Shown here in pieces: positions 13,632-56,462 of a stretch of 64,000 nucleotides of DNA. Within the stretch, counting starts at the first letter, position 1, and each line of letters begins with the position of its first letter. The stretch comes from Octopus bimaculoides (Eukaryota). The notes beneath the pieces were generated by a model. The model worked only from the letters and a program-made list of their open reading frames with translations, was not told the origin of the DNA and searched no databases. The position numbers were made by a program, and so were the translations under genes. The stretch spans positions 20,858,418-20,922,417 of the forward strand of contig NC_069007.1 in assembly GCF_001194135.2 (NCBI RefSeq), given 5' to 3'.

Positions 13632-14621
13632 TCACGTTTCACAATTGGAAGAATTTCTTTTGGTATGTATACGTTTGTGTCTGTTTAAATAATCCCCAGT
13701 GACGAACGATTTCTCACATATTTCACAGTGATAGGGTCGTTCGCCAGTGTGCCTCCGTATATGGATAACAAGACTAGAATTCTGAGTGAAAGATTTACCA
13801 CATATTTCACAATGAAACTGTTTTACTCCCGTGTGGATCAATTTGTGTCTACTTAAATCATCGTTTTTGACAAATGATTTTCCACATGTTTCGCAACGAT
13901 AGGGCTTTTCTCCTGTATGTATTCTATTATGTTTTGTTAAGACACTGTTAGAGACAAAAAATTTCCCACATGTTTTACATTGATAAGGCTTTTCTCCGGT
14001 GTGACTACGAATGTGGGCAATAAGATTCGAATTATTACTGAAAGATTTACCACACACTTGACAGTGATAAGGCTTTTCTCCGGTGTGACTACGAATGTGG
14101 GTAATAAGATTGGAATTATTACTGAAAGATTTACCACACACTTGACAGTGATAAGGCTTTTCTCCGGTGTGTATTAATCTGTGTGCTGTTAAGTTAGTAT
14201 TAGCCACAAACGACTTCCCGCAGATTTCACAGTGAAATGGTTTTTCTCCTGTATGGCTACGTACGTGGATAACAAGATTAGAATTCTGAAAGAAAGATTT
14301 CCCACAAATTTTACAATGAGACGATTTTTCTCCGGTGTGTCTACGTTTGTGTCTTGCTAAATTACTTTCAGAGACAAAAGGTTTCCCACACACATCACAG
14401 TGAAATGTATTCTCTGCTTTGTGTAAATCTGTGTGTTTGAACAATTCATCTTCGGATGAGAATGTTTTTCTACAAATATCGCAACGATATTCAGCAATAT
14501 TTCTTTGTTCGGTAAATGTCTCGCTATATAAAGGTTTCTCACCATTGTATGTTGGTGTAATTGGACTTCCATCGTTAATTACCGTGTTATTAGAAGAATC
14601 CAAGTGATTAACGTCTTCCAT
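13632..14621 (-). CDS. ZF4: C2H2 zinc-finger protein, 10 fingers (MEDV family)
   Basis: ORF MEDVNHLDSSN...; ends CET*. Confidence 0.93.
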   Translation of the reverse strand: MEDVNHLDSSNNTVINDGSPITPTYNGEKPLYSETFTEQRNIAEYRCDICRKTFSSEDELFKHTDLHKAENTFHCDVCGKPFVSESNLARHKRRHTGEKSSHCKICGKSFFQNSNLVIHVRSHTGEKPFHCEICGKSFVANTNLTAHRLIHTGEKPYHCQVCGKSFSNNSNLITHIRSHTGEKPYHCQVCGKSFSNNSNLIAHIRSHTGEKPYQCKTCGKFFVSNSVLTKHNRIHTGEKPYRCETCGKSFVKNDDLSRHKLIHTGVKQFHCEICGKSFTQNSSLVIHIRRHTGERPYHCEICEKSFVTGDYLNRHKRIHTKRNSSNCET

Positions 14622-14972
14622 ATTAATTAACCAGGAATTCTTAAAAGCTGTAGAAATGTCTGTTGCTATTTCGGACTTGTATCGAAAGATCGCCGGTTCA
14701 ATTTGTTATTAGATATCACGGGACTTTGTTTACATGCTGTAATTAATTTAGCTAAACCAATTATAATACAAGGTTGGCGGTGTTGTTTGTAATATTGTCC
14801 CTTCTTTAAATTTACGATGTAGCGTAGTTTGTGATGTAAGGAGATATAGAATTAAGCAGATATAGAACACCAACAATGTAACATATAAGTCACTCCTATG
14901 CTATCCACATTGTGACGTTTATCATACTACAATTCAGAATTAAATTAACCAAACTTAACACAATAAGGTAAT

Positions 14973-15050
14973 GTCGGTGAGAATTTCCCCCTCACCTTAT
15001 GTACAACGGTGATATAAATTAATAGTCCCTTACATAATTCAAGACATTCA
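14973..15050 (-). promoter_or_regulatory. MEDV upstream cassette (ZF4), displaced by extra sequence
   Basis: Matches consensus TTAAATTATGTTAGGG..TCACCG(G/T)T..AGGGAAA..CGACA; a second GGCGGTG box at 14776. Confidence 0.6.
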
Positions 15051-16684
15051 TAAAAAGCCTTCCGATGATAAGAATTTAGTCTTTCAAGTGTATCCCAATT
15101 CATGGTAAAGCAAAATGACAATAACGTATCAACGAAAGAGCCTCAGTTTGGTCACTCGACCAGCATGAAATAACAGTCAATTCCCCTCAAACCAGACCCT
15201 TTTGCCTTAGAAAAGAGACGTTCGGCAGTGTCGTCCTATGTATACAAAAATGAGATCGACACGGTTGAAAATGCTTTTCATTTTAGCTCTGAGCGATCAT
15301 GCTAATCTAATAGTAAACAACAACGTTTAACTTTTCCCTCCAACGGTTATAGAGTTGATTTTAGGCACCAATTCGCAGTGTTGTAGACGTCACGCCGTAA
15401 TGACTGTCTCCACCCCCGCCAAATCGTTTTAACAACTGCATGCTTAAACCGATATGCAAATATATATATATATATATATANNNNNNNNNNNNNNNNNNNN
15501 NNNNNNNNNNNNNNNNNNNNNNNNNNNNNNNNNNNNNNNNNNNNNNNNNNNNNNNNNNNNNNNNNNNNNNNNNNNNNNNNNNNNNNNNNNNNNNNNTATA
15601 TAGTGAAGGCAGGCATCAGCCAAATTAATTAAAAACAATGTGAATAAACAAGTATTACATTTAACAGAATATTCTGAATGCTAAAGGGATATTGAGAAAG
15701 AAAATAACATTAACAAATATAGCTTAAACATTTTAATTTAAAATGCATACAATTATTATAAAGAAATATTTCAATTTATATGTAAATTATTTGAACATTT
15801 TGTCGTAAATTTAAGAGGTAATATTTTACATAAATTTCTCATATTTCTGTTTATGAAGCATCTTTTTAAGAAGTCATTTCAGTAACGTTTTTCACCTGTG
15901 TATATTTTACTTAAATTCAAACATGGCTTTTCAACAGAATTAATTTCCCCCTCATTTCAAATTTATAAAGTCATTTTTTAACTTTGTGTCTTTCCAATGA
16001 TAATGAGACAAACAGTGAATGATCTTCCTCCAAGGTATATTCTTGGATTGTAATACTAGAATTTAGAGAATGATGATAGCATATTTCACAGTGAAAGGTT
16101 TCTTCTGTCTGTGATCAGCTATGAATCACATATGAAGATTTACTTAATCCAGTTATTTCCCTTTGATATAGATTTTATCTAATGTATATTCCAGTCGTGG
16201 GCAACCTGCAAAACTTTCTGAATGGCACCCCTAATGAAAACTGGTCTTGAATTTGTTTTAGTAGTGTGGCCCACCTTATGATGAGTTGCATTTCATGCAG
16301 TCTTGCTTCACAAGAACGATTTCCAATGTCTGGTGTGTTCACTTGTCAAAGTTCACAAATAATGATTTCCTAGTTAAAGATGTAAAAGACACCCAGTACA
16401 CTTTGTGGAATGGTTGGCGTCCAGCTGTTGAAACCAAGCCAAAACAGGCTGGAGCCTGGTGCAACTCTCTGCTGGCTTACCAGCTCCAGTTAAACTGTCT
16501 TACCCATGCTAGTGTGGAAAACAGACCCTAAATGAAGATGATTCTCTTTCAAAGAACATATTTGTGGGCCTACATGATACGAATTCAAAAAGAAAGTGAT
16601 TTCTGGTATTTTATGCCCACATATGTTCTCCAATGAATACTTGTTGACACATTATAGGTTTAGATTAAAAAAGAGACACATGTC

Positions 16685-18400
16685 TTATGTTTCACATTTG
16701 AGAGGCTTCCCTCTAGTGTGCAATCGTTCATGTCTTTTTAAAAGACTGCTAGAAATGAAAGATTTCCCACATATTTCACAACAATAGGGTTTTTCTCCCG
16801 TGTGTTTCCGTTTGTGTATGTTTAAATCACTGTTATTAACAAAGGATTTCCCACACACTTCACAGGCACAAGGTTTTTCTCCAGTGTGTCTACGCTTGTG
16901 ACTCATAAGATCAAAATTTCGAGAGAAAGATTTCCCACACATATCACAAAGATATGACTTTTCTCCCGTGTGTATTTGCTTGTGCACAACAAGGGAAGAA
17001 TTTTTACCGAACGACTTGTCACATATATTACAATGGTAAGGTTTCTCTCCTGTATGACTACGTACGTGGATAACAAGTTTCGAATTGTGAGTGAAAGCTT
17101 TTCNNNNNNNNNNNNNNNNNNNNNNNNNNNNNNNNNNNNNNNNNNNNNNNNNNNNNNNNNNNNNNNNNNNNNNNNNNNNNNNNNNNNNNNNNNNNNNNNN
17201 NNNNNNNNNNNNNNNNNNNNNNNNNNNNNNNNNNNNNNNNNNNNNNNNNNNNNNNNNNNNNNNNNNNNNNNNNNNNNNNNNNNNNNNNNNNNNNNNNNNN
17301 NNNNNNNNNNNNNNNNNNNNNNNNNNNNNNNNNNNNNNNNNNNNNNNNNNNNNNNNNNNNNNNNNNNNNNNNNNNNNNNNNNNNNNNNNNNNNNNNNNNN
17401 NNNNNNNNNNNNNNNNNNNNNNNNNNNNNNNNNNNNNNNNNNNNNNNNNNNNNNNNNNNNNNNNNNNNNNNNNNNNNNNNNNNNNNNNNNNNNNNNNNNN
17501 NNNNNNNNNNNNNNNNNNNNNNNNNNNNNNNNNNNNNNNNNNNNNNNNNNNNNNNNNNNNNNNNNNNNNNNNNNNNNNNNNNNNNNNNNNNNNNNNNNNN
17601 NNNNNNNNNNNNNNNNNNNNNNNNNNNNNNNNNNNNNNNNNNNNNNNNNNNNNNNNNNNNNNNNNNNNNNNNNNNNNNNNNNNNNNNNNNNNNNNNNNNN
17701 NNNNNNNNNNNNNNNNNNNNNNNNNNNNNNNNNNNNNNNNNNNNNNNNNNNNNNNNNNNNNNNNNNNNNNNNNNNNNNNNNNNNNNNNNNNNNNNNNNNN
17801 NNNNNNNNNNNNNNNNNNNNNNNNNNNNNNNNNNNNNNNNNNNNNNNNNNNNNNNNNNNNNNNNNNNNNNNNNNNNNNNNNNNNNNNNNNNNNNNNNNNN
17901 NNNNNNNNNNNNNNNNNNNNNNNNNNNNNNNNNNNNNNNNNNNNNNNNNNNNNNNNNNNNNNNNNNNNNNNNNNNNNNNNNNNNNNNNNNNNNNNNNNNN
18001 NNNNNTTTTCACACTGAAACCGCCTCTCGCCAGTATGTATCGTTTTATGTCTTGACAAAATAATATTAGAAACAAAATATTTCCCGCATATATTACAATG
18101 GAAAGGTTTCTCTCCTGTATGACTACGTACGTGGATAACAAGTTTCGAATTGTGAGTGAAAGCTTTTCCACATATTTCACACTGATATGGTTTCTCCTTC
18201 TTATGTATGTCTTTGTGTGTGATTAATTCATGCTCTGAAAAATATGTTTCCTTGCAAATCTCACAGCTATATTCAGTAATATTTCTCTGTCTTGATCTCT
18301 GTTCAGTGAATTTTTCATTGCGTGCAAGTTTCTCACAGTTGTATGTTTGTGAAGCTGAATCTACATCGTTAGAAGATCCCAAGTGATTAACATCCTCCAT
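16685..18400 (-). CDS. ZF5: C2H2 zinc-finger protein interrupted by a 903-N gap; 7 complete fingers visible (MEDV family)
   Basis: MEDV ATG at 18400 (another in-frame ATG at 18472). Fingers on both sides of gap 17104-18006; continuity across the gap is assumed, not seen. Confidence 0.8.
   Translation of the reverse strand: MEDVNHLGSSNDVDSASQTYNCEKLARNEKFTEQRSRQRNITEYSCEICKETYFSEHELITHKDIHKKEKPYQCEICGKAFTHNSKLVIHVRSHTGEKPFHCNICGKYFVSNIILSRHKTIHTGERRFQCEXXXXXXXXXXXXXXXXXXXXXXXXXXXXXXXXXXXXXXXXXXXXXXXXXXXXXXXXXXXXXXXXXXXXXXXXXXXXXXXXXXXXXXXXXXXXXXXXXXXXXXXXXXXXXXXXXXXXXXXXXXXXXXXXXXXXXXXXXXXXXXXXXXXXXXXXXXXXXXXXXXXXXXXXXXXXXXXXXXXXXXXXXXXXXXXXXXXXXXXXXXXXXXXXXXXXXXXXXXXXXXXXXXXXXXXXXXXXXXXXXXXXXXXXXXXXXXXXXXXXXXXXXXXXXXXXXXXXXXXXXXXXXXXXXXXXXXXXXXXXXXKAFTHNSKLVIHVRSHTGEKPYHCNICDKSFGKNSSLVVHKQIHTGEKSYLCDMCGKSFSRNFDLMSHKRRHTGEKPCACEVCGKSFVNNSDLNIHKRKHTGEKPYCCEICGKSFISSSLLKRHERLHTRGKPLKCET
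17104..18006. other. Assembly gap (903 N); other gaps at 3122-3224, 15481-15596, 50069-50141 and 51792-51801
   Basis: Runs of N. Confidence 1.
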
Positions 18401-18519: not shown

Positions 18520-18610
18520 GCAAGTTGGCGGTGTCGCTAATAGTTTCCCCTTGCTATAATTATTCCGGTGTTTTAAGTTAAAAGTTCCTAATATAGTTTA
18601 ATCGATTCAT
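18520..18610 (-). promoter_or_regulatory. MEDV upstream cassette (ZF5)
   Basis: Sense strand: TTAAACTATATTAGGAAC..ACACCGGA..AGGGGAAAC..CGACACCGCC. Confidence 0.65.
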
Positions 18611-20154: not shown

Positions 20155-21930
20155 TCATGTCTCACATTTTAAAGACTTCCCTCCAGTGTGTATGCGTACA
20201 TGTCTCTTTAAAAGACTGCTTGTAATAAACGATTTCCCACATATTTCACAGTGAAACAGCTTTTCTCCCGTGTGTTTCCGTTTGTGTATGTTTAAATCAC
20301 TGTTATTAACAAAAGATTTCCCACACACTTCACAGGCACAAGGTTTTTCTCCAGTGTGTCTACGCTTGTGACTCATAAGATCAAAATTTCGAGAGAAAGA
20401 TTTCCCACACATATCACAAAGATATGACTTTTCTCCCGTGTGTATTTGCTTGTGCACAACAAGGGAAGAATTTTTACAGAACGACTTGTCACATATATCA
20501 CAATGGTAAGGTTTCTCTCCTGTATGTATTTGATTGTGACGTTTTAAATCGTGGTTTTTAAGAAAAGCTTTCCCGCAGATTTCACAGTGATAAGGTTTCT
20601 CTCCAGTGTGTATTTTTTTGTGTGCTTTTAATAAGCTATTAGTCAGAAAAGATTTCCCACAAATATCACAAGAATAAGGATTTTCACCAGCATGCATCAT
20701 TTTATGAACTACAAGTTGTGAATTCACATAGAACGATTTCCCACATATATCACAGTGGAAAGGTTTCTCTCCAGTGTGGATTCGTTCATGTGTTTTTAAA
20801 TCACTGTTATTTACAAACGATTTGCCACAAATTTCACAATGATGTGGTAATTCTCCAGTGTGTCTACGTTTGTGAACTACGAGATTAGAATTATCAGAGA
20901 AAGATTTGCCACATATGTCACAGTGAAACGGGTTTTCTCCAGTGTGTATCCTACTATGTCTTTTCAAATTACTGCTATAGAGAAAAGACTTGCCACAAAT
21001 TTCACAACTGAAGGGTTTTTCACCACTATGTATTCGTTCATGAGTTTTTAAATCACTGTTATTTACATAAGATTTGCCACATACTTCGCACACATACGGT
21101 TTTTCTCCTGAGTGCCGACGTTGGTGGATTGTAAGCTTAGCATTTTCAATAAAAGACTTCCCGCATATTTCACAATGAAACGGTTTTTCTCCAGTGTGTC
21201 TACGTTCATGGATGACAAGTTTCAAATTATTTATAAAACTTTTTCCACATATTTCACAGTGTAACAATTTCTCTCCAGTGTGCAGCCTTTTGTGAATTGC
21301 CAAACTACTATTGGAGACAAAACACTTCCCACAAACATTACAATTGCATGGTTTCTCTCCAGTATGACTACGTATATGAATGACAAGTTTCGAATTATTA
21401 ATAAATGATTTTCCACATATTTCACATTGAAATGGTCTCTCACCAGTATGTATCGTCTTATGACGTGACAAAATAATATTAGAAACAAAATATTTCCCGC
21501 ATATATTACAATGGAAAGGTTTCTCTCCGGTGTGACTGCGTACGTGGATAACAAGACTGGCATTCTGAGTGAAAGATTTTCCGCATATTTCACACTGATA
21601 TGGTTTTTCTCCAGTGTGTATCCTTTTGTGAATTGCAAGATGAGAATTATTTACAAACGATTTCCCACATATCTCACAGTGAAATGGTTTCTCTCCTGTA
21701 TGTGTTCTTGTGTGTGTTGTTAGAAAAACGTTCGATGGGAAAGATTTCCCGCATATTTCACAGTGGTAGGGTTTTTCTGTCTTGTGTATTTCTTTGTGTG
21801 ATAATAATTCCTCTTCCGACGAGAATATTTTACTACAAATCTCACAGTTTTTTTCAGTAATATTGCTATGAAATGATTTTCCTTCAGCAAATGTTACGTT
21901 GGAAGTGTCCAAGTCCTTAACGTCTTCCAT
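20155..21930 (-). CDS. ZF6: C2H2 zinc-finger protein, 20 fingers (MEDV family)
   Basis: ORF MEDVKDLDTSN...; ends CET*. Confidence 0.93.
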   Translation of the reverse strand: MEDVKDLDTSNVTFAEGKSFHSNITEKNCEICSKIFSSEEELLSHKEIHKTEKPYHCEICGKSFPSNVFLTTHTRTHTGEKPFHCEICGKSFVNNSHLAIHKRIHTGEKPYQCEICGKSFTQNASLVIHVRSHTGEKPFHCNICGKYFVSNIILSRHKTIHTGERPFQCEICGKSFINNSKLVIHIRSHTGEKPCNCNVCGKCFVSNSSLAIHKRLHTGEKLLHCEICGKSFINNLKLVIHERRHTGEKPFHCEICGKSFIENAKLTIHQRRHSGEKPYVCEVCGKSYVNNSDLKTHERIHSGEKPFSCEICGKSFLYSSNLKRHSRIHTGENPFHCDICGKSFSDNSNLVVHKRRHTGELPHHCEICGKSFVNNSDLKTHERIHTGEKPFHCDICGKSFYVNSQLVVHKMMHAGENPYSCDICGKSFLTNSLLKAHKKIHTGEKPYHCEICGKAFLKNHDLKRHNQIHTGEKPYHCDICDKSFCKNSSLVVHKQIHTGEKSYLCDMCGKSFSRNFDLMSHKRRHTGEKPCACEVCGKSFVNNSDLNIHKRKHTGEKLFHCEICGKSFITSSLLKRHVRIHTGGKSLKCET

Positions 21931-22836: not shown

Positions 22837-24246
22837 ATGGAAGACGTTAATCAGTTGGACACTTCTGGTAAGACAATTCTTAACGATGTAGATTCGGTTG
22901 TGCAAACATACGATGACGAGAAACCTTTATATGGTGAAACAGTTATTGAACAGAAATCAATACAGAGAAATATTGGTGAATATAGTTGTGAGGTTTGTAA
23001 GAAAACATTTCCTTCACAACACGAAGTCTTCACACACAAGGAAACACACAAGAAGAAGTTAAAACCATATCGGTGTGAAATTTGCGGCAGATCATTCAAG
23101 CAGAATTCTCATCTTGTAGTTCACAAAAGAATTCATACTGGGGAAAAGCCTTTTGGCTGTGAAATATGCGGGAAATCATTCATTAAGAAACTGAATCTTG
23201 TCATTCACCTCCGTAGCCATACAGGCGAAAAACCCTTCCACTGTAAAATATGTGGCAAATCTTTCGTCTCCAAGAGTAATTTAGCAAGGCATGAAAGAAT
23301 ACACACTGGAGAAAATCCGTTAAACTGTGAAATATGTGGGATATCTTTTCATCATATTAATGATTTAACTACGCACAAAGGAAAGCACAATGGAAAAGAA
23401 CCATTTCACTGTGAAATATGTGAGAAATCTTTCGTCTCTAATAATCATTTAATAAGGCACCGAAGGATACACACTGGAGAAAAACCTTCTTCTTGTGATA
23501 TTTGTGGGAAATCTTTTCTTGATAGAAGTAATTTAACAACTCACAAATTAATACACAGTGGAGAGAAACGGTTTCAGTGCAAAATGTGTGGAAAATCTTT
23601 TACCCAAAATAATCATCTTGTAGTTCATAAAAGAAGACATACAGGAGAAAAGCCTTATCACTGTGAAATCTGTGGGAAGGCCTTTGTATCTAACAGTGAT
23701 TTAAAAACACATAAAATAACGCATACTGGAGAAAAACCTTTTCATTGCGAAACGTGTGGAAAATGCTTTACTCAGAAGTCCAGCCTTGTTGTTCACAGAA
23801 AAATACACACTGGAGAAAAGCTGTTTCATTGTGAAGTGTGTGGAAAGTCTTTCATTAATAATTTTAATTTTGTTATCCACGTCCGTAGTCACACCGGAGA
23901 AAAACCTTTCCATTGTGAAATTTGTGGAAAGTCGTTTGTCTGTAAAAGTAAGTTAGTGACACACATAAGAACACACACTGGAGAAAAACCGTTTCACTGT
24001 GAAATCTGTGGGAAATTTTTTCTTGATAGTAGTAATCTAACAATACACATAAGAATACATACTGGAGAAAAGCCTTATCGTTGTAAAACTTGTGGGAAAT
24101 CGTTTCTTAATAGTAGTAATCTAACGACTCACAAAAGAATACACACTGGAGAGAAACCTTTTCAGTGCGAAATTTGTGGAAGATCTTTCCGTGACAGCCG
24201 TAATTTAACACCTCACAAAAGAACACATTTGAGAAAAAAAGTTTAA
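22837..24246 (+). CDS. ZF7: C2H2 zinc-finger protein, 15 fingers (MEDV family)
   Basis: ORF MEDVNQLDTSG...; the last finger is unit 1 of the downstream 80-bp tandem repeat. Confidence 0.93.
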   Translation: MEDVNQLDTSGKTILNDVDSVVQTYDDEKPLYGETVIEQKSIQRNIGEYSCEVCKKTFPSQHEVFTHKETHKKKLKPYRCEICGRSFKQNSHLVVHKRIHTGEKPFGCEICGKSFIKKLNLVIHLRSHTGEKPFHCKICGKSFVSKSNLARHERIHTGENPLNCEICGISFHHINDLTTHKGKHNGKEPFHCEICEKSFVSNNHLIRHRRIHTGEKPSSCDICGKSFLDRSNLTTHKLIHSGEKRFQCKMCGKSFTQNNHLVVHKRRHTGEKPYHCEICGKAFVSNSDLKTHKITHTGEKPFHCETCGKCFTQKSSLVVHRKIHTGEKLFHCEVCGKSFINNFNFVIHVRSHTGEKPFHCEICGKSFVCKSKLVTHIRTHTGEKPFHCEICGKFFLDSSNLTIHIRIHTGEKPYRCKTCGKSFLNSSNLTTHKRIHTGEKPFQCEICGRSFRDSRNLTPHKRTHLRKKV

Positions 24247-26701: not shown

Positions 26702-28273
26702 ATGGAAGACGTTAATCACTTGGATACTTCTAACGATCTAGATTCAGTTCCACAGACATACAAGAGTGAAAAAGCTGTGTGTGATGAAACGGTAACTGAA
26801 GAAAGATCATCAAACAGAAATCTTACTGAATATAGCTGTGATATTTGTAGCAAAACATTTCCTTCCGAACAGGAAGCCTTCACGCACAAAGAAATACACA
26901 AGACAGAAAAACCTTATTGTGAAATTTGTGAGAAATTTTTCTTAAGAGATTCTCATTTTGTTATCCACAAACGTATCCACACTGGAGAAAAACCGTTTCA
27001 TTGTGAACTATGTAAAAAATCTTTTATTTCTAACAGCGATTTAAAAAGACACAGACGAATACATACCGGGGAAAAACGGTTTCACTGCGAAATATGTGGA
27101 GAAGCATTTATAGAAAGATCAAAACTTGCTATTCACATACGTCGTCATACTGGAGAAAAACCGTTCGAATGTGAAATATGTAAGAAATCGTTTGTTACTA
27201 ACGGTGAATTAACAAAACACACCACTTCACACACTCGGGAAAAACCATTCCACTGTAAAATATGCGGGGGAACTTTCATTGATAGTTCAAAACTTGTTAT
27301 TCACATACGCCGTCATACGGGAGAGAAACCATTCCATTGTGAAATATGTACGAAATCATTTGTCAGTAACGGTGAGTTAAGAAAACACGAGGCTGTGCAT
27401 ACTCCACAAAAACCATTTCACTGTGAAATGTGTGGGAAAGCTTTCGTTAGTGATGCAGATCTTGTTATTCACACATGTAAGCACGCTGGGGGGAAACCTT
27501 ATCACTGTGATGTGTGTGGGAAATCGTTTAAATCTGACAGTTACTTAACAAAACACAGAATCAGACACACTGGAAACAAACGCTTTCACTGTGAAATGTG
27601 TGGGAAGTCTTTCGCCTCTAAGAATAATGTAGTAAAACACGAAAGAAGACACACTGGGGAGAATCTGGTTTACTGTGAAACGTGTGGAAAATCGTTTGTC
27701 ACCAAAGACGACTTAAACAAACACAAAAGAATTCACACTGGAGAAAACCCTTTTCCCTGTGAAATCTGTGGGACCTATTTTCTCGATTTTAGTCATTTAA
27801 CAACGCATAAAAGAATACATACGGGAGAAAGGCCGTTTCTCTGTGACATTTGTGGAAAATCTTTTGCTCAGAATTCCTATTTTATCGTTCACAAAAGAAT
27901 TCATACTGGAGAAAAACCTTACCGTTGCGAAATCTGTGGAAAGTGTTTTGTATGTAAAAGTGATTTATCAACTCATGAAAGAACACATACTGGATTAAAA
28001 CCGTTTGATTGTAAAATATGTGGCAAAGCATTTGCTCGGAATTCGAATCTTATAGTTCACAGAAGAATACATACTGGGGATAAACCTTTTCATTGCGAAG
28101 CTTGTGGGAAACCATTTACCTCAAACAGTGATTTGACGATACACAGACGAATACACACTGGGGAAAAACCCTTTCACTGTAATATATGTGGGAAAAAATT
28201 TATTGCACACAGTCACTTAAAAAGACATGTACAAGTACATACAAGCGAGGGGCCTATCATATATGAAACGTGA
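26702..28273 (+). CDS. ZF8: C2H2 zinc-finger protein, 17 fingers (MEDV family)
   Basis: ORF MEDVNHLDTSN...; ends YET*. Confidence 0.93.
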   Translation: MEDVNHLDTSNDLDSVPQTYKSEKAVCDETVTEERSSNRNLTEYSCDICSKTFPSEQEAFTHKEIHKTEKPYCEICEKFFLRDSHFVIHKRIHTGEKPFHCELCKKSFISNSDLKRHRRIHTGEKRFHCEICGEAFIERSKLAIHIRRHTGEKPFECEICKKSFVTNGELTKHTTSHTREKPFHCKICGGTFIDSSKLVIHIRRHTGEKPFHCEICTKSFVSNGELRKHEAVHTPQKPFHCEMCGKAFVSDADLVIHTCKHAGGKPYHCDVCGKSFKSDSYLTKHRIRHTGNKRFHCEMCGKSFASKNNVVKHERRHTGENLVYCETCGKSFVTKDDLNKHKRIHTGENPFPCEICGTYFLDFSHLTTHKRIHTGERPFLCDICGKSFAQNSYFIVHKRIHTGEKPYRCEICGKCFVCKSDLSTHERTHTGLKPFDCKICGKAFARNSNLIVHRRIHTGDKPFHCEACGKPFTSNSDLTIHRRIHTGEKPFHCNICGKKFIAHSHLKRHVQVHTSEGPIIYET

Positions 28274-32201: not shown

Positions 32202-33350
32202 CTATAAAACAGTTTTGTCTCTTGTGTGTATTTTTTTATGTAAACTAAGAGCTGAACTGTGAGAGAAAGATTTCCCACACAGCTCACAATGGAATGGTTT
32301 TTCTCCAGTATGTACTCTTTTGTGAGATACAAGATGAGCATTTTGAGTGAAAGATTTACCACAAGTATCACAGTGAAACCGTTTTTCTCCAGTGTGTGTT
32401 CTTTTATGAGTTCTTAAATTGCTGTTATCGAGAAAACTTTTCCCACAAATCTCACAATGAGAAGGTTTTTCTCCTGTATGGACTCTTATGTGTTTGACTA
32501 AATCGTTTTTAGAGAAGAAAGACTTCTCGCATACTTGACAGTGAAACGGTTTCTCTCCTGTGTGTATTCTTCTGTGTCTGGCTAAATTACTTCTAGAGAC
32601 GGAAGGAATTCCACATAGTTCACAGTGGAAAGGTTTTTCTCCGGTGTGACTCCGTATATGGATAACAAGACTTGATTTCCAACAGAAAGATTTTCCACAT
32701 ATTTCACAATGAAACGGATTTTCTTTAGCTTCTGTTTCTAAATCACCACTTATATCAAATTGTTCCCCATCTGTTTGATTTCCGGAGGTCTCCTCTCCAG
32801 TGTGGCTACGCATATGGAGAAGAAGATTCGGTTTATGAACGAAAGTATCACCACAGATTTCGCACCGAAACAGCATTCTTCTCGTGTGTACTTTTGTATG
32901 TGTTTTTAAGACAGAAAGATAAGCGAATGATTTTCCACACGTTTCGCAATGGAACGGTTTCTCTCCAGTGTGACTTCGTACGTGGATAATAAGTCCTGAA
33001 TTATGGAAGAAAGACTTCCCGCATATTTCACACGGAAACAATCTTTGTCTACTGTGTCGTCTTTTGTGCCATGTTAATTTTTTTCTAGAGGCAAAACACT
33101 TCTGACATATTTCACACTCATTTGTCTTTTCGCTCTTGTGTGTGCGTGTGTGCATAAATAATTCGTGTTCTGAAGAGAACATTTTCTTACAAATCTCACA
33201 GCTATATTCAGTAATATTTCCGTCTAATGATTTTTGATCAGTAAATGTTTCATCACATAAGGTTTTCTTACCGTTGTCTGTCTGTGAAATTGAATCTACA
33301 TCGTTAAAAACAGTTGCGTTAGAAGAATCTATGTCATCAACGTCTTCCAT
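32202..33350 (-). CDS. ZF9: C2H2 zinc-finger protein, 11 fingers split 5+6 by an acidic linker (MEDV family)
   Basis: Track ORF starts at TTG 33404; MEDV ATG at 33350. Confidence 0.93.
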   Translation of the reverse strand: MEDVDDIDSSNATVFNDVDSISQTDNGKKTLCDETFTDQKSLDGNITEYSCEICKKMFSSEHELFMHTRTHKSEKTNECEICQKCFASRKKLTWHKRRHSRQRLFPCEICGKSFFHNSGLIIHVRSHTGEKPFHCETCGKSFAYLSVLKTHTKVHTRRMLFRCEICGDTFVHKPNLLLHMRSHTGEETSGNQTDGEQFDISGDLETEAKENPFHCEICGKSFCWKSSLVIHIRSHTGEKPFHCELCGIPSVSRSNLARHRRIHTGEKPFHCQVCEKSFFSKNDLVKHIRVHTGEKPSHCEICGKSFLDNSNLRTHKRTHTGEKRFHCDTCGKSFTQNAHLVSHKRVHTGEKPFHCELCGKSFSHSSALSLHKKIHTRDKTVL

Positions 33351-33562: not shown

Positions 33563-33584
33563 AAAATGTTTCAGTTTTATTAAC

Positions 33585-33885: not shown

Positions 33886-34986
33886 ATGGATTCAGTTGCA
33901 CAGATATACAATGGTAAGGAATCTTTATGTAATGAAACATTTACTAAACAAAGATCATTACGCAAAAATATTACTGAATATCTCTGTAATATTTGTAAGA
34001 AAACATTCTCTTCAGAAGATGGTTTATTAACGCATAAGAAAATACACAAGAGTAAAAAACCATTTCGCTGTGAAATATGTGAGAAATCTTATGTATCTAA
34101 AAGTAATTTAACAAGTCACAAGAGGATACATACTGGAGAAAGACTATTTCGTTGTGAAATATGTGGGAAATATTTTATCCACAATTGTAAACTTGTTGCC
34201 CATATGAGTAGTCACACTGGAGAGAAACGGTTCCATTGTGAAATATGTACGAAATCGTTCGTGAGTATAAGTAACTTGAAGGAACATAGGAACTTACACA
34301 CTGGAGAGAAACGGTTTCACTGTGAGATATGTGGGAAATCTTTCTTTTGGAAAAAGAGTTTTGTTATCCACGTGCGTTGTCATACGGGAGAGAAACCCTA
34401 TCGTTGTGATATATGTGGAAAATCTTTCGTATCTAGTAGCAATTTAGTACATCACAAAAAAATACATACTGGCGAAAAACCATTTCACTGTGAAATATGT
34501 GGTAAATCGTTTGTCGCTAATGACGAATTGACAAAACACAACAGAACACATACTGGAGAAAACCCTTTCCACTGTGATATATGCGGGGAATCGTTTCTTG
34601 ACAGTAGTAACTTAACAACTCATAAACGGACACACACCGGAGAGAGACCTTTTCACTGTGAAATATGTGGGAAATCTTTCAGACAGAATTCCCATCTTAT
34701 ATTTCACATAAGAAGGCATACTGGAGAAAAGCCTTTTCATTGTGAAATGTGTGGTTTATCTTTCGTTTCTAACAGTGACTTAACAATGCACAAAAGAAGA
34801 CATACTGGAGACAAACAGCATCACTGTGAAATATGTGGGAAATCTTTTGTCTCCAGCAGTGAACTGACATCTCATAAAAGAACTCACACTGGAGAAAACT
34901 GTGTTGTTTGTATGAAATCTTTTGTGTCTAAGAAAGAATTGCTGGCACATAAAAATACACACTTGAGTGATACATATTCCCCGTGA
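33886..34986 (+). CDS. ZF10: C2H2 zinc-finger protein, 12 fingers, N-terminally deleted MEDV-family member
   Basis: ORF MDSVAQIYNGKESLCNETF...; upstream sequence matches the MEDV 5' leader. Confidence 0.93.
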   Translation: MDSVAQIYNGKESLCNETFTKQRSLRKNITEYLCNICKKTFSSEDGLLTHKKIHKSKKPFRCEICEKSYVSKSNLTSHKRIHTGERLFRCEICGKYFIHNCKLVAHMSSHTGEKRFHCEICTKSFVSISNLKEHRNLHTGEKRFHCEICGKSFFWKKSFVIHVRCHTGEKPYRCDICGKSFVSSSNLVHHKKIHTGEKPFHCEICGKSFVANDELTKHNRTHTGENPFHCDICGESFLDSSNLTTHKRTHTGERPFHCEICGKSFRQNSHLIFHIRRHTGEKPFHCEMCGLSFVSNSDLTMHKRRHTGDKQHHCEICGKSFVSSSELTSHKRTHTGENCVVCMKSFVSKKELLAHKNTHLSDTYSP

Positions 34987-37689: not shown

Positions 37690-37775
37690 CTGAAGGTGTT
37701 AAATTATGTTAGGGAACTTTTATTTATGACACCGGTGTCAGTGACAAGAGGAAAATATTTCGAACAACACCGTTG
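37690..37775 (+). promoter_or_regulatory. MEDV upstream cassette (ZF11)
   Basis: TTAAATTATGTTAGGGAAC..ACACCGGT..AGAGGAAAA..CAACACCGT. Confidence 0.65.
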
Positions 37776-37893: not shown

Positions 37894-38949
37894 ATGGATC
37901 GCGTTAATCACCTGAACACTTCTAACGATGTTGGTTCAGTAATAGAAGCACACAATGGTAAGAAAGCTTTATGTAATGAAACATTTACTAAACAAAGATC
38001 AACGCGTAAAAATATTACTGAATACAGCTGTGAAATTTGTAAGAAGACTTTCTCTTCGGAGCATAAATTATTCGCGCACAAAGACACACACAAGAAGGGG
38101 AACCCCCTCGAGTGTGAAATGTGTAAGAAATCGTTTGTCTCCAAAATTAAATTAACAAGACACAAGAAAATACACGTCTGCGATAAACCGTTTCAGTGTC
38201 AGATCTGTGAGAAATCTTTCTTTCAGAATGCAGAACTCGTTATCCATGTACGTAGTCATACTGGAGAGAAACCATTCCATTGTCAAACATGTGGGAAAAC
38301 ATTCGTCAGTGGTCTTGTGTTAAGAAGACATATGAAAATACATACAGGAATAAAACCGTTTCGGTGCGAAATATGTGGGGAGTCTTTCGTTCGTAATCCG
38401 AATCTTCTGATCCACATACGTAGTCACACTGGAGAGAAACCCTATCATTGTGATATTTGTGAAAAATCCTTCGTTTCCAGAAGTAATTTGGCGATACACA
38501 AACGACGGCATACTGGCGAAAAACTATTTCACTGTGAAATATGTGGTAAATCGTTTGTCACTAATGGCGAATTAACAAAACACAACAGAACACATACTGG
38601 AGAAAACCCTTTTCAGTGTGACATTTGTGGGGAATCGTTTCTTGACAGTAGTAACTTAACAACTCATAAACGAATCCATACTGGAGAGAGACCTTTTCCC
38701 TGTGAAATATGTGGGAAATCTTTCACCCAGAATTCCCATCTTGCAGTTCACAGAAGAATGCACACTGGAGAAAAGCCTTTTCATTGTGAAACTTGTGGGA
38801 AATCTTTTGTGTCCAACAGTGATTTAACAACTCATAAAAGGATTCATACTGGAGAGAAACCTTTTCATTGTGAAATATGTGGCAAATCTTTCAGACAGAA
38901 TTCTAGTCTTGTTGTTCACAAAAGAATACACACTGGGGAAAAAGTTTGA
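37894..38949 (+). CDS. ZF11: C2H2 zinc-finger protein, 11 fingers (MEDV family)
   Basis: ORF MDRVNHLNTSN... Confidence 0.93.
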   Translation: MDRVNHLNTSNDVGSVIEAHNGKKALCNETFTKQRSTRKNITEYSCEICKKTFSSEHKLFAHKDTHKKGNPLECEMCKKSFVSKIKLTRHKKIHVCDKPFQCQICEKSFFQNAELVIHVRSHTGEKPFHCQTCGKTFVSGLVLRRHMKIHTGIKPFRCEICGESFVRNPNLLIHIRSHTGEKPYHCDICEKSFVSRSNLAIHKRRHTGEKLFHCEICGKSFVTNGELTKHNRTHTGENPFQCDICGESFLDSSNLTTHKRIHTGERPFPCEICGKSFTQNSHLAVHRRMHTGEKPFHCETCGKSFVSNSDLTTHKRIHTGEKPFHCEICGKSFRQNSSLVVHKRIHTGEKV

Positions 38950-40890: not shown

Positions 40891-41973
40891 TCACATTTCG
40901 CATTTAAAAGTCTCTCCTCCAATATGTATTTCTTTGTGTCTTTTTAAGCGACTGCTAGTGATAAAAGATTTTCCACAAATATCACAATGATAAGGCTTTT
41001 CTCCAGTATGTATTGTTTTGTGAACTGCAAGATGGGAATTTTGAGTGAAAGATTTCCCACATATTTCACAGTGGAAAGGTTTCTCTCCAGTATGGATTCG
41101 TTTATGTGTTGTTAAATTACTACTGTCCATAAAACATTCGCCACACGTATCACAGTGAAACGGATTTTCTCCAGTGTGAATTCTTTTGTGTTTCGTTAAA
41201 TCACCATTGGTGACAAAAGACTTTCCACATACTTCACAGTGAAACGGTTTTTCTCCCGTATGTATTTTTTCGTGTCTTACTAAATTACTTTTAGAGACGA
41301 AAGACTTGTCACATGTTCCACAATGATAAGGTTTCTCTCCGGTATGACTACGTATATGGACAACAAGACTCGAGTACTGAATGAAAGATTCCCCACATAT
41401 TTCACAGTGGCGCGGTTTTTCTCCAGTATGTATCCTTTTGTGACTTACTAAATAACTATTGTGCACAAAAGATTTTCCACAGACATCGCAGCGAAAGGGT
41501 TTCTCTCCAGTATGTATAATTTTATGCGTTGTTAAGTGACCATTTGTGATAAAAGATTTCCCACACATTTCACAGTGATATGGTTTTTCTCCAGTGTGAC
41601 TACGTACGTGAATTACAAGGTGAGAATTACTTATGAAAGATTTACCACATATTTTGCAGTGATACCGTTTTCCTCCGCTGTGACTACGTTTGTGTCTTGC
41701 TAATTGACTCTCAGAGACGAAGGATCTCCCACATATTTCACAGTAAGGTTTTTCTGGCTTGTGTACGTTACTATGTGTAAATAATTCATAGTCAGAAGGG
41801 AATGCTTTCTTACAGATGTCACAGCTATAGTTTGTAATATTTCTACGTAATGATCTTTGTTCAGTAAATGTTTCGTTATATAAAGCTTTCTTACCATTGA
41901 ATGTCTGTGTGATTGAATCTATATCGTTAAAAACAGTTGTATTAGAAGTATCCAACTGATTAACGTCTTCCAT
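40891..41973 (-). CDS. ZF12: C2H2 zinc-finger protein, 11 fingers (MEDV family)
   Basis: ORF MEDVNQLDTSN...; ends CEM*. Confidence 0.93.
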   Translation of the reverse strand: MEDVNQLDTSNTTVFNDIDSITQTFNGKKALYNETFTEQRSLRRNITNYSCDICKKAFPSDYELFTHSNVHKPEKPYCEICGRSFVSESQLARHKRSHSGGKRYHCKICGKSFISNSHLVIHVRSHTGEKPYHCEMCGKSFITNGHLTTHKIIHTGEKPFRCDVCGKSFVHNSYLVSHKRIHTGEKPRHCEICGESFIQYSSLVVHIRSHTGEKPYHCGTCDKSFVSKSNLVRHEKIHTGEKPFHCEVCGKSFVTNGDLTKHKRIHTGENPFHCDTCGECFMDSSNLTTHKRIHTGEKPFHCEICGKSFTQNSHLAVHKTIHTGEKPYHCDICGKSFITSSRLKRHKEIHIGGETFKCEM

Positions 41974-49953: not shown

Positions 49954-50363
49954 GACATCAGACGACGTTGACAGAAGCGAATTCTTCACTTCAGATGTAT
50001 CATCTATATTAGCTTTTAAGGATTCAAGGAGGTTGTTATACAGAGATATAATCCATGCTGAACTATTGNNNNNNNNNNNNNNNNNNNNNNNNNNNNNNNN
50101 NNNNNNNNNNNNNNNNNNNNNNNNNNNNNNNNNNNNNNNNNGGACAAATTTATGAAGGAGTTCACAGCATCTTTAAATACCAACAAAGATCTCATTTGGT
50201 GGAAGTATAGGAGAGGCATGTTCATTGTGATTAAACTATATATATATTAAAGAAAGAACAGTAAAAATATTCTCAATATCTATGTATTCTGGTGATAGAG
50301 AAAAACTCATGGGAATATGAATTATATAAGAAGCTGAAAGGATTGATATCTTTTTCTTGGGAA

Positions 50364-51468: not shown

Positions 51469-51952
51469 GACATCAGACAACATTGACAGAAGCGAATTCT
51501 TCACTTCAGATGTATCATCTATATTAGCTTTTAAGGATTCAAGGAGGTTGTTATACAGAGATATAATCCATGCTGAACTATTGTGAAATATTTCTTCTGA
51601 ACTGCAATTTATAAATTTCTCAACTTCAGCATCTGGAATGTGTGTGAGATGCTTTTGTGTTCTACATAATCATGGACAAATTTATGAAGGAGTTCACAGC
51701 ATCTTTAAATACCAACAAAGATCTCATTTGGTGGAAGTATAGGAGAGGCATGTTCATTGTGATTAAACTATATATATATTAAAGAAAGAACNNNNNNNNN
51801 NGAGGCATGTTCATTGTGATTAAACTATATATATATTAAAGAAAGAACAGTAAAAATATTCTCAATATCTATGTATTCTGGTGATAGAGAAAAACTCATG
51901 GGAATATGAATTATATAAGAAGCTGAAAGGATTGAAATCTTTTTCTTGAGAG

Positions 51953-52999
51953 ATGCCAAAAATGACAGGAAAATCATCATACGACTGTGATATCTGTAAA
52001 AAGTCCTTCTCTCAAAAATGTAACCTCAACACGCACAAATGCATTCATACAGGAGAGAAGCCATTTCACTGTGATATCTGTGGTAAATCATTCTCTCAGA
52101 CAGGTGGTTTAACTGCTCACAAACGTAGTCATACAGGTGATAAACCTTATCGTTGTGATATCTGTGGAATATTATTCTCTCAAAAAGATAACCTAGCAAA
52201 ACATAAACGTATTCATACAGGAGAGAAACCATATCACTGTGATACTTGTGGCAAGTCCTTCTCTCAGACAGGTACTCTAACAAGACACAAACGCATTCAT
52301 ACAGGAGATAAACCATATCACTGTGATATCTGTGGTAAATCATTTTCTCATACTGGTAATTTAACTATACACAAATATATTCATACAGGAGACAAACCAT
52401 ATCGCTGCGATATCTGTGGTAAATCATTCTCTCATACAAGTAGGTTAACTACACACAAGTACATGCATACAGGTGAGAAGCCATATCACTGCGATATCTG
52501 TGGTAAAGCATTCTCTCAAAACAGTCACTTATCTGCTCACAAACTAATTCATACAGGGGAGAAACCATATTGCTGTGATGTCTGTGGCAAAGCATTCTCA
52601 GAAGGAAATAAATTAACTAAACACATACGTAGTCACACAGGAGACAAACCCTATCCCTGTGATATCTGTGGTAAATCATTCTCTCAGACAGGTAGCTTAA
52701 CTATACACAAGTACACGCATACAGGAGAGAAACCACATCAGTGTGATATCTGTGGTAAATCATTCTCTCAAACCAGTCACTTATCTGCTCACAAGTATAT
52801 CCATACAGGGGAGAAACCATATCCCTGTGATATCTGTGGCAAAGCATTCTCAGAAGGAAGTAAATTAACTCAACACAAACGCATTCATACAGGCGAGAAA
52901 CCATATCAGTGTGATATCTGTGAAAAATCTTTCTCACGTAGTGGTGATTTAGCTAAACACAGACGTGTTCATATTGAGATGGAAACCATAATGCTATGA
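51953..52999 (+). CDS. ZF15: C2H2 zinc-finger protein, 12 fingers, close tandem duplicate of ZF14 (CD family)
   Basis: ORF MPKMTGK...ETIML*; same N- and C-termini as ZF14. Could be an uncollapsed haplotype. Confidence 0.82.
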
Positions 53000-54645: not shown

Positions 54646-54659
54646 GATGGTGGTTTCAA

Positions 54660-54836
54660 CAGTTTCAAGAGAGGGGGTATCTGTGTAACGGAAAAAGTCC
54701 AGGACGACCACAAGTTTCAGGAAATAAAAGTTGATTGTGAGTAAATACTTGTGACTTAGCTGGAGTTTTTCTATTGCTTTTCCTTATCAAAATATAGCGT
54801 AATGAAATTGGTTCATTCTTTTTGAATACCCCTGTA
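54660..54836 (+). mobile_element. Tc1/mariner remnant
   Basis: Fragment translates G-Y-L-C-N-G-K-S-P-G-R-P-Q-V-S (GRP motif); TIR-like end GGTTCATTCTTTTTGAATACCCCTGTA. Confidence 0.55.
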
Positions 54837-54980
54837 TAATTCAACGTTAGGTGAAACAAAATCAGCCTAGGACATGCACAGGTGTCTTACTACAGAGGAA
54901 ACACATGGCTAAAGCAAGACAGAGGAACATGCACAAGTATCTTGCTATAAAAGAAATACATGGCTATCATGATCAACGTT

Positions 54981-56462
54981 TCATGCAGTGTGCATTGTTG
55001 CATGTTTCTTTAAGCTATCACTTCTGGTAAACGATTTCCCACATATTTCACAAGGATGCGGTCTTTCTCCGGTATGTGTTCTTCTGTGAACTATTAGATT
55101 TGAATTATAAGAAAAAGATTTACCACATATTTCACAACACAGTTTTTCTCCAGTGTGGATTTTTTTGTGTTGTGACAAGACATTATTATTGGAGAAAGAT
55201 TTGCCGCAGATGTTACATTTAAAGGATTTCCCTCCAGTATGTGTCCTTCTGTGAGCAGAAAGATAAGATTTATGAAAGAAACTTTTCCCACATATTTCAC
55301 AGTAACAAGTTTTCTCTCCACTGTGTATTCTCTTATGGACAGAAAGATTGAAATTATTAGAGAAATATTTGTTACATATTTCACAATGACTGAGTTTTTC
55401 TCCAGTGTGTGTTCTTCTGTGTCTTTTTAAAGAATTATTCAAACTAAAAGACATTCCGCATATCTCACAGACAAATGGTTTTTCTCCAGTGTGTGTTGTT
55501 TTGTGTCTTTTTAAAGAATAATTCAAGCTAAACGACTTCCCACAAATCACGCAGAGAAAAGCTTTTTCTCCGGTGTGTGTTCTTTTGTGTCCAACAAGAT
55601 TGGCATTGTTAGAGAAAGATTTGCCACAAATTTCACAACAATATGGTCTTTCCCCAGTATGGGTCCTGTTGTGTATTTTTAATTTACTACTACACATAAA
55701 TGCTTTCCCACATATTTCACAGTGGAAGGGTATTTGTCCAGTATGGGCCCTGTCATGTAGTTTTAACTTACTACTAGATATAAATGCTTTTCCACATATT
55801 CTACAGTGATACGGTTTCTCTCCTGTATGAGTCCTGTTGTGCTCTTTTAAGTGACAACTAGTTACAAATGCTTTTCCACATATTTCACAGTGATAAGGTT
55901 TTTCTCCAGTATGGATCCTTTTATGTGTTTTTAACTGAATATTAGACACAAATGATTTTCCACAAACTTCACAGCAGAAGGGTTTTTCTCCAGTATGAAT
56001 CCTGTTGTGTATTTTCAAATTTGTTCTCGACACAAAAGTATTTCTGCATATTTCACAGTGATAGAGTTTTTTCCCAGCGTGTGTTTTTATGTGTTGTGTT
56101 AAATTACTTTTAGAGCCAAATGCTTTTCCACATATTTCACAGGGATAAGGTTTTTCTCCCGTATGAGTTCTGTTATGTATTTTTAATTGACTACTACACA
56201 CAAACGACTTGCCGCATATTTCACACTGATATGGTTTTTTCCTATTGTGCATTTCTTTGTGTTCGAAGATTTCCTGTTCTAAAGAGAAAAGTTTCCCACA
56301 AACATCACATTTATGTTTCGTAATATTTACCTGGAACAATCGTTTAGTAAATGTTTCCCCATGTAGAGATTTCTCATATTTCTCCGTGTCCCTAACTGTA
56401 TTTGTATTGTTAAAAACAGTTGTGTTAGACGTATTGAAGTCCTTAACGTCCTCCATGTTCAT
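54981..56462 (-). CDS. ZF16: C2H2 zinc-finger protein, 16 fingers (divergent MEDV family)
   Basis: ORF MNMEDVKDFNTSN...; MEDV ATG at 56456. Confidence 0.93.
   Translation of the reverse strand: MNMEDVKDFNTSNTTVFNNTNTVRDTEKYEKSLHGETFTKRLFQVNITKHKCDVCGKLFSLEQEIFEHKEMHNRKKPYQCEICGKSFVCSSQLKIHNRTHTGEKPYPCEICGKAFGSKSNLTQHIKTHAGKKLYHCEICRNTFVSRTNLKIHNRIHTGEKPFCCEVCGKSFVSNIQLKTHKRIHTGEKPYHCEICGKAFVTSCHLKEHNRTHTGEKPYHCRICGKAFISSSKLKLHDRAHTGQIPFHCEICGKAFMCSSKLKIHNRTHTGERPYCCEICGKSFSNNANLVGHKRTHTGEKAFLCVICGKSFSLNYSLKRHKTTHTGEKPFVCEICGMSFSLNNSLKRHRRTHTGEKLSHCEICNKYFSNNFNLSVHKRIHSGEKTCYCEICGKSFFHKSYLSAHRRTHTGGKSFKCNICGKSFSNNNVLSQHKKIHTGEKLCCEICGKSFSYNSNLIVHRRTHTGERPHPCEICGKSFTRSDSLKKHATMHTA

Follow-up and report, generated by a model that had tools for sequence, protein, structure and literature searches.

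The window analysed here is a 64,000-nucleotide stretch of the Octopus bimaculoides genome (NCBI RefSeq assembly GCF_001194135.2, contig NC_069007.1, positions 20,858,418 to 20,922,417 of the forward strand). It is AT-rich, holds five gaps of N and carries 17 long open reading frames (ORFs) for C2H2 zinc-finger (ZNF) proteins on both strands. Ten of them start with a short MEDV-type leader, and all ten lie between 13632 and 56462 (Table 1). The first-pass annotation of this DNA had read the motif in ten proteins, together with an atypical first finger and a linker other than TGEKP, as a lineage-specific effector module, possibly the cephalopod analogue of KRAB, ZAD or FiNZ. The motif, the finger and the linker are present as described. 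We suggest, however, that the ten genes represent one Octopus-restricted, tandemly duplicated poly-zinc-finger subfamily, in which a single ancestral gene would have passed on a 5′ unit of ~250 bp of noncoding DNA, a start codon, a ~50-aa acidic leader and a distinctive first finger.

A hidden Markov model (HMM) of the leader, run against the six-frame translation of the whole window, gives exactly ten matches at 27-103 bits, with the next best at E = 1.6. This is far beyond chance. The lowest score, 27 bits, belongs to the deletion variant g21930-, and the other nine copies reach 58-103 bits. The protein starts with MEDV in eight members, with MDRV in g37894+ and with MDSV in g33886+, which has lost codons 2-18 but not the ATG. 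The leader occupies 28-50 residues before the first Cys, contains 0-1 cysteines per copy and follows the consensus MEDVNxLDTSN(xTVxN)DxDSVxQTxNGEKxLxxETFTEQRSxxxNITEY with a mean column identity of 62%. The leader of g21930- has lost 22 aa from its middle in frame, so that the N-block MEDVKDLDTSN and the C-block beside finger 1 remain. The leader is always N-terminal to the array and forms one uninterrupted ORF with all the fingers in 10/10 copies, apart from the gap in g18400-. It is followed by the finger C-x-I-C-x-K-x-F-S-S-E-H-E-L-F-T-H-K-x-I-H, the linker K-x-E-K-P and then 10-20 canonical fingers. All first-finger helices quoted in the first-pass annotation are found, and the linker reads HK.EKP or a variant of it, never HTGEKP; in g22837+ it is one residue longer (HKKKLKP). 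The alignment of the ten copies runs from about -250 through the array, which at the sequence level speaks for their common descent.

Several members have peculiarities of their own. In g26702+ (26702-26911) and g41973- (41749-41973) the linker between fingers 1 and 2 is one codon short (EKPY-CEIC); missing is the residue that separates the conserved aromatic from the first Cys of finger 2. In the g33350- ORF (32205-33350, minus strand) the linker that joins the fifth finger to the sixth carries an inserted acidic stretch of ~24 aa (ETSGNQTDGEQFDISGDLETEAKEN). The genes g33350- and g33886+ are arranged head-to-head, 536 bp apart.

Table 1. Leader-bearing genes and other features of the 64,000-nucleotide window. 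Gene names give the position and strand of the ATG; bit scores are those of the leader HMM.
Feature	Coordinates	Strand	Score (bits)	Remarks
g14621- leader (44 aa), finger 1 and linker	14406..14621	-	82.8	4-aa in-frame deletion in the leader C-block
g14621- whole ORF with stop	13632-14621	-		329 aa, 10 fingers
Conserved noncoding upstream block, example (about -250 to -1)	14622..14870	-		block precedes every member
g18400- leader and finger 1	18188..18400	-	82.3	without the 5-aa NTTVF segment
g18400- 3′ part beyond the gap	16685-17103	-		ORF enters the 902-N gap past finger 3
g21930- leader and finger 1	21769..21930	-	26.8	ORF 591 aa, 20 fingers
g22837+ full-length leader (50 aa before the first Cys) and finger 1	22837..23067	+	95.5	469 aa, 15 fingers
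g26702+ leader and finger 1	26702..26911	+	79.9	without the 5-aa segment; 523 aa, 17 fingers
g33350- full-length leader and finger 1	33123..33350	-	96.0	ORF 382 aa, 11 fingers
g33886+ truncated leader (MDSV...) and finger 1	33886..34062	+	57.9	366 aa, 12 fingers; C-block intact
g37894+ leader (MDRV...) and finger 1	37894..38106	+	82.0	without the 5-aa segment; 351 aa, 11 fingers
g41973- full-length leader and finger 1	41749..41973	-	102.7	ORF 360 aa, 11 fingers
g56456- leader and finger 1	56232..56456	-	83.2	most divergent copy in the window; 491 aa, 16 fingers
Bipartite CACCG motif, exact matches	18529-18570, 33478-33521, 33698-33739, 37730-37772			upstream of members only
Seven other poly-ZNF ORFs	923-2068, 5291-6952, 9063-10157, 44431-46008, 50265-51323, 51950-52996, 59633-60574			CDICGKSFS-type fingers

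The leader resembles no described domain in the databases searched. With hmmscan of the ten N-termini against Pfam (E ≤ 10) it has no match, including none to KRAB (A box, PF01352), ZAD (PF07776), SCAN or BTB, and C2H2-type families match over finger 1 only. The full-length g33350- protein matches only zinc-finger families in Pfam, and the leader profile finds only noise among PDB sequences (E ≥ 0.79). Searched against 1.84 billion representative proteins, the leader profile returns nine matches. One is a bacterial repeat, a false positive; the eight true ones comprise five zinc-finger proteins of O. bimaculoides and O. sinensis, one UniParc record and two Logan/ENA fragments. No squid, cuttlefish or other mollusc protein is recovered from this set, nor any fish ZNF, the search being made from the leader side with no FiNZ model in the comparison. 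A word-indexed homologue search gives no match for the leader alone and only two Logan fragments for the leader with finger 1; with a full-length query the list is swamped by vertebrate poly-ZNFs and contains no orthologues. Exact look-up of four plus-strand window proteins gives no match. The genomic loci of three matched proteins, taken from two chromosome records of O. sinensis and one of O. bimaculoides, share the leader and finger 1 and are similar in sequence upstream of the ATG as well. No 1:1 orthologues of the window genes were found, and the O. sinensis and O. bimaculoides loci recovered are related, non-orthologous members. The module is kept at the N-terminus in 15/15 intact genes compared from loci of both species. 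The leader is real, undescribed and new to databases.

Since the leader occurs only in Octopus ZNF matches and is absent from the seven other ZNF ORFs of the window, its distribution indicates that it marks one Octopus subfamily and not cephalopod ZNFs in general. Two of the earlier claims hold within the scope of these searches: neither KRAB nor ZAD is detected at the Pfam threshold and the leader profile reaches no fish ZNF, and the leader is lineage-specific, as all species-assigned true matches are Octopus ZNFs. The extension to a cephalopod analogue fails, with no match in squid, cuttlefish or another mollusc and with other leaders on 7/17 ZNF ORFs of the window itself. As a side observation, the public model XP_029645730.2 spans 53 kb of locus L002 (10001-63618; O. 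sinensis CM016873.1), where the family member is read from one contiguous ORF (9935-10687) and goes on in a different frame (10647-10928); it is probably a frameshifted copy or an annotation artefact. A related member on Logan contig L001 (1570-2308; SRR11869391) has an intact HTGEK in its leader and a frameshift past finger 2, and probably is a pseudogene or carries a read error.

We suggest that the leader itself could derive from zinc fingers. Its centre reads (T/H)(Y/H)(N/T)GEKP(L)(Y/C)xETF-x5-L-x2-N-x3-Y, which resembles the canonical H-TGEKP-F-x-C-E...F-x5-L-x2-H-x3-H minus the zinc ligands. The F-x5-L spacing is retained (LCDETFTDQKSL), and a related copy retains KTHTGEKVLCDETF. When a profile of 17 leaders is compared by hhalign with 105 double-finger units, TQTxNGEKxLxxET aligns to the linker with a score of 14.9 (P = 0.0095), which 0/150 column-shuffled controls reach (mean 7.2, maximum 13.7). 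For 5/17 leaders the finger HMM beats 199-200 of 200 shuffles. In five copies a decayed finger also lies past the stop codon, and ZNF clusters are known to contain degenerate fingers both inside their arrays and behind them (PMC2865497). A relic origin agrees with the contiguity of leader and fingers in one ORF and with the decay that terminal fingers are known to undergo in such clusters. The leader would resemble the relic fingers at array ends (PMC2865497) in the loss of zinc ligands and in apparent traces of the TGEKP linker and the F-x5-L spacing, and it shares one exon with the array. Unlike them, it keeps a start codon and both end blocks, in paralogues and in two species, and its persistence exceeds what an inert relic needs. 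That the leader is a decayed remnant of former N-terminal fingers seems to us a matter of roughly balanced chances. The contiguity of the leader with the finger ORF and its HTGEKP-like relic favour decay of fingers over an acquired effector exon. On this reading, the leader contains no self-standing effector domain that was acquired in the manner of KRAB, ZAD or FiNZ.

The leader is under weak constraint, and finger 1 is under purifying selection. Selection was estimated for the 10 window genes and for 15 sequences, which are those genes and five from O. sinensis, O. bimaculoides and the Logan contig. The maximum-likelihood dN/dS (omega) of the leader is 0.62 for the 10 genes (likelihood-ratio test against omega = 1, p = 0.017) and 0.71 for the 15 sequences (p = 0.028). 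The corresponding values for finger 1 are 0.31 (p = 9e-7) and 0.29 (p = 5e-11), and fingers 2-3 give 0.155 (10 genes). The pooled pairwise Nei-Gojobori estimate (NG86) for the leader is 0.67 (bootstrap 0.47-0.93). Most constrained are its N-terminal ten residues, with an omega of 0.45 vs 0.71-0.75 for the remainder. In-frame deletions of 1-22 aa occur in 8/10 leaders (22, 17, 5 in three copies, 4 and 1 aa), and only 2/10 copies have the full 50-aa leader. Because the fingers need the frame anyway, such deletions indicate tolerance of loss and not selection for the leader. The first-pass annotation had named a dN/dS near 1 and frequent frame-preserving loss genome-wide as outcomes that would refute a functional module, and by this standard the leader falls short in part. 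The leader omega of 0.62-0.71 is significantly, if only marginally, below 1, and the deletions in 8/10 window leaders do amount to frame-preserving loss, though never of the whole leader in the copies seen.

Structure prediction, proposed earlier as a check of the module, gives no confident leader fold. AlphaFold2 was run with the ten window sequences and one homologue, with g41973- as the query. The predicted local distance difference test (pLDDT) score stays under 50 over residues 1-24, reaches 52-67 over residues 24-48 and is normal, 77-87, for fingers 1 and 2. The model draws a low-confidence beta-hairpin at residues 24-41 (strands 24-31 and 34-41, pLDDT 52-60) and a low-confidence strand at 46-51 that runs into finger 1. 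A Foldseek search of the predicted structure against the PDB finds only ordinary zinc-finger arrays, none at E ≤ 0.001. The first 20 residues of the leader have a net charge of -2 to -7, the whole leader has -2 to -10 in 7/10 copies, and S/T/N/Q make up 29-44% of it. The model and the composition are most likely those of a mostly disordered, acidic, S/T/N-rich tail.

Finger 1 is different. Its C-x2-C-x12-H-x3-H ligands are invariant in 10/10 copies, it is matched by PF00096 or PF13912 above or near the cut-offs, and it is modelled as a normal finger with a pLDDT of 77-80. In 17 sequences from at least two species, compared with 119 other fingers, the helix hardly varies at positions -1 (S), +1 (E), +3 (E) and +5 (F), where the entropy is 0.64-0.83 bits (0.64 bits at -1, +1 and +3) vs 1.8-2.7 bits in other fingers. 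The helix carries a net charge of -1.7 vs +0.47, and a charge of -2 or lower is found in 65% of finger 1 copies vs 0.8% of the other fingers. The HTGEKP linker occurs after 0/17 finger 1 copies, vs 55/119 exact occurrences in the other fingers, most of the remaining ones being close variants. Thus, the acidic first finger of the first-pass annotation is borne out in its charge; the finger is also constrained, with nearly invariant specificity positions and an omega significantly below 1 at p ≤ 1e-6. Since its helix is conserved across paralogues and species while the other helices vary, the sequences indicate that finger 1 is an intact zinc finger which is not used for paralogue-specific DNA recognition. 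As to the premise of the first-pass annotation that acidic recognition helices are poor DNA binders, finger 1 of Zif268 (RSDELTR) has D and E at +2 and +3, yet binds DNA. A shared, non-target-specific role of finger 1, possibly in protein interaction, is plausible.

Hence, we propose the following history of the subfamily. The leader would go back to one or two fingers, once N-terminal, whose zinc ligands were lost and which now form a weakly constrained, mostly disordered tail, in which only the N-terminus MEDVxxLxTS and the 15 residues before finger 1 (ETFTxQRSxxxNITEY) are consistently kept. Finger 1 and the adjoining C-block would have a function shared by the subfamily, such as a protein-protein contact, self-association or capping of the array. 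We give this account as a whole, namely a subfamily leader, a tail of decayed fingers and a conserved finger 1 without target specificity, an even chance of being right.

Several observations weigh against it. The whole leader is lost in no copy of any species seen. At the amino-acid level the leader is no more diverged than the fingers (proportion of nonsynonymous differences, pN, 0.25 vs 0.24-0.28). At silent sites its divergence is about half that of the array; in colinear pairs over whole arrays the proportion of synonymous differences (pS) is 0.15-0.38 in the leader vs 0.45-0.68. Summed over the tree, dN is flat along the gene (leader 1.7, finger 1 1.6, fingers 2-3 1.5) and dS climbs (2.8, 5.1 and 9.7, respectively). 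If the dS of the array is taken as the neutral yardstick, the omega of the leader falls to ~0.2-0.3, which is a finger-like constraint. The relic-finger signal is weak at the DNA level (nhmmer 3.2 bits in one copy, ~0 in two others) and leans mainly on the GEKP motif. Finally, AlphaFold2 on only 11 sequences may miss a genuine fold, given the hairpin 24-41 and the strand 46-51 that it draws.

We consider the array, and not the leader, to be the dS outlier, because the leader dS is near that of the flanks and the arrays show exchange of fingers. At silent sites the leader diverges by ~0.3-0.35; the proximal 5′ flank, with 0.32-0.40, is close to this, and the 3′ flank, with 0.41, is somewhat higher. 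As to finger exchange, adjacent fingers of g14621- at 13977-14171 are 97% identical in DNA with an 84-bp period, which by its sequence is a very recent intragenic finger duplication and points to ongoing turnover of the array. At 23962-24723 there is an 80-bp tandem array of 7-9 truncated finger units (83-87% matches), which begins within the last fingers of g22837+ and extends ~480 bp beyond the stop of that gene; its extra copies are out of frame, because the period is 80 bp and not 84 bp. Two other causes of the low leader dS were tried and rejected. The G+C content at third codon positions (GC3) is 0.25 in the leader, 0.37 in finger 1 and 0.29 in fingers 2-3, and eight leaders fold as RNA no better than shuffles (z -1.4 to +1.35).

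The effector-module proposal of the first-pass annotation is a tentative alternative to relic decay. According to it, the leader and the acidic finger 1 would be a true module, functionally analogous to KRAB, ZAD or FiNZ, that recruits a cofactor via short linear motifs of a disordered acidic tail or dimerises via finger 1 and the adjoining strand. It draws on the retention of the module in all 15 intact genes of the two species, on the survival of the N-block (omega 0.45) and the C-block even in deletion variants, on a leader omega significantly below 1 with a dN no higher than that of the fingers, and on the conserved, acidic helix of finger 1. The acidic, Glu-rich composition is shared with FiNZ and KRAB (PMC10547256), and the extra strands drawn by AlphaFold2 beside finger 1 recall Drosophila proteins, in which a single N-terminal C2H2 finger and the adjacent strand dimerise (PMC12774644). 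However, the constraint is weak by the standard test, in-frame losses are frequent and no fold is predicted with confidence; the leader is confined to one subfamily and cannot explain the octopus ZNF expansion at large; and it shares its ORF with the fingers, unlike the KRAB and FiNZ exons. We regard a true effector module as possible but rather unlikely.

FiNZ of cyprinids is, like the octopus leader, a short, lineage-restricted, acidic N-terminal sequence unlike known domains, which marks one large, tandemly expanded poly-ZNF subfamily. However, FiNZ is 28 aa long, highly conserved, set apart on an exon of its own that precedes the finger exon, and backed by knock-down evidence for transposon repression, whereas the octopus leader has 28-50 aa, is variable in length and contiguous with the fingers, and evolves at an omega of ~0.6-0.7. 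KRAB (PF01352) of the tetrapod KRAB-ZNFs is likewise acidic and N-terminal on rapidly duplicating, clustered poly-ZNF genes, but KRAB folds into a module of ~45-75 aa that binds TRIM28 and lies on exons apart from the fingers, while the octopus leader has no Pfam match at E ≤ 10, no confident fold and no exon boundary. For finger 1 the closest functional precedent, by analogy, is the dimerising N-terminal C2H2 finger of dipterans, which dimerises through an adjacent beta-strand (PMC12774644). In both cases conserved residues directly precede an N-terminal C2H2 finger whose conservation does not depend on that of the DNA-reading array; in octopus these residues are NITEY, which AlphaFold2 draws as an extra strand at low confidence (pLDDT 52-67). 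The octopus finger differs in being continuous with the array and in having no CGx-Phi motif, since the residues before it are RNITEY(S/R) with no CG dipeptide. The effector or dimerisation idea survives mainly for finger 1 and the adjoining 15 residues, where it is best called doubtful. That the C-terminal half of the leader and finger 1 form an Octopus-specific protein-interaction unit (for self-association or for recruiting a co-regulator), which would lend the subfamily a common effector function and would be an independently evolved counterpart of KRAB, ZAD or FiNZ built from decayed fingers and not from an acquired exon, we consider unlikely.

In a second alternative to relic decay, it would mainly be the nucleotide sequence of the leader that is conserved, either as part of a 5′ regulatory unit of promoter, 5′ UTR and initiation context from about -250 to +150 or through gene conversion between 5′ ends, with the peptide playing a minor part. 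Homology between paralogues does reach ~40-250 nt upstream of the ATG and fades within ~80 nt past the stop, and the conservation extends into the noncoding DNA (p = 0.32 at -30..0, rising to 0.50 at -250..-170). Further from the ATG the upstream blocks contain GC-rich CACCG motifs, among them the bipartite CACCG-N(25-50)-ACACCG at ~110-190 nt upstream of member ATGs, for which 4 exact matches are found vs 0.06 expected; degenerate versions lie upstream of most other members. This motif is a candidate shared promoter element. Divergence at the three codon positions is 0.33/0.19/0.29 in the leader, flat and with no third-position excess, and 0.24/0.18/0.46 in finger 1, with the usual excess; leader silent sites are 2-3 times less diverged than those of the array, which GC3 does not explain. 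In the head-to-head pair g33350-/g33886+ pS is 0.15 in the leader and 0.10 in finger 1 vs 0.63 elsewhere in the gene, and leaders are closer within the window than to other loci (0.27 vs 0.33), a difference that finger 1 does not show. However, some selection does act on the peptide, as omega is below 1 and divergence is lowest at the second codon position (0.19). RNA folding gives no stable structure, and silent sites are unsaturated (0.38) even between chromosomes and species, where gene conversion is unlikely. The array dS, moreover, may be inflated by the finger exchange at 13977-14171 and 23962-24723. Overall, a mainly nucleotide-level conservation appears to us quite improbable.

Very improbable is a third alternative, in which the MEDV Met is internal and CAG|CTTTTAAG is an acceptor that joins upstream coding exon(s), with the true N-terminus, and any effector, elsewhere: most copies share an acceptor-like TTTCTACAG ~27 nt before the ATG, the frame from it to the ATG is open in 8/10 copies and the model XP_052833736.1 adds 106 aa upstream, but in-frame stops interrupt this interval in two window copies, contig L001 reads CAT where the others have CAG, no Pfam family matches the 106-aa extension, and no non-finger ORF of at least 90 codons lies directly upstream of any member in the ORF list, as inspected by eye only. 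We take the ATG as the start codon, because the Met is invariant (19/19 aligned family sequences), because in-frame stops lie two codons (g37894+) and three codons (g56456-) upstream of it, and because the 17-codon deletion in g33886+ spares it. Member ATGs have a Kozak-like A(-3)/G(+4) context, and 4/5 RefSeq/UniProt-derived models start at the MEDV-type Met. The upstream block holds TTTCTACAG|CTTTTAAGAATTCCTGG, a possible splice acceptor that ends ~10 nt before the ATG and occurs before members only; a noncoding 5′ exon spliced at this CAG is possible.

The only gap inside a member is the 902-N gap at 17104-18005, which falls past finger 3 of g18400- and leaves its leader and finger 1 (18188-18400) unaffected. 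The same finger sequence (KAFTHNSKLVIHVRSHTGEKP) stands on either side of the gap, which suggests a repeat-induced assembly break; as 902 is also not a multiple of 3, the ORF of g18400- may not continue in frame across the gap, and its finger number is provisional. The C-terminal fingers of g18400- match those of g21930- closely, and the two are therefore probably sister genes. Gaps are also present at 15481-15596, 50069-50141 and 51792-51801, either between genes or beside ZNF ORFs of another subfamily. In the style of its gaps the window resembles the O. bimaculoides assembly, in which the 31-kb locus L003 has 4019 N; the O. sinensis loci have no N. The seven ZNF ORFs that are not members belong to a different subfamily and have other short leaders, including MENEL...KIDF and MPK(V/M)TGKSSYDC; their first fingers also tend to be atypical, e.g. 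SQKDEQTIH. A 154-codon non-finger ORF at 57729-58190 on the minus strand (…EWRLFIDNSKRNLKYILLYNGN…GYTKYACIF…) has no Pfam match and by eye looks like a transposon-derived fragment. An interspersed repeat of ~350-380 bp has two copies in the window, in opposite orientations (47684-48054 and 62571-62913), and 86-92% identical copies at L002 64277-64656 and L003 56-442 (O. sinensis and O. bimaculoides loci).

The C2H2 zinc-finger expansion of octopus genomes ranks among the largest known, and to our knowledge no effector domain has been described for octopus C2H2 zinc-finger proteins. A survey of cephalopod C2H2 genes does not mention N-terminal motifs (PMC12513265), and a study of metazoan ZNFs predicts that octopus ZNFs bind transposons and names no effector (PMC10547256). 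The conserved N-terminal unit, if true, would provide an experimental handle on how at least one ZNF subfamily acts. Because the unit is subfamily-specific and the leader loosely constrained, finger 1 with the 15 residues before it is the better experimental target. The case also shows how much dN/dS in repeat arrays hinges on the chosen neutral yardstick, and it may illustrate how decayed terminal fingers can persist as conserved leaders.

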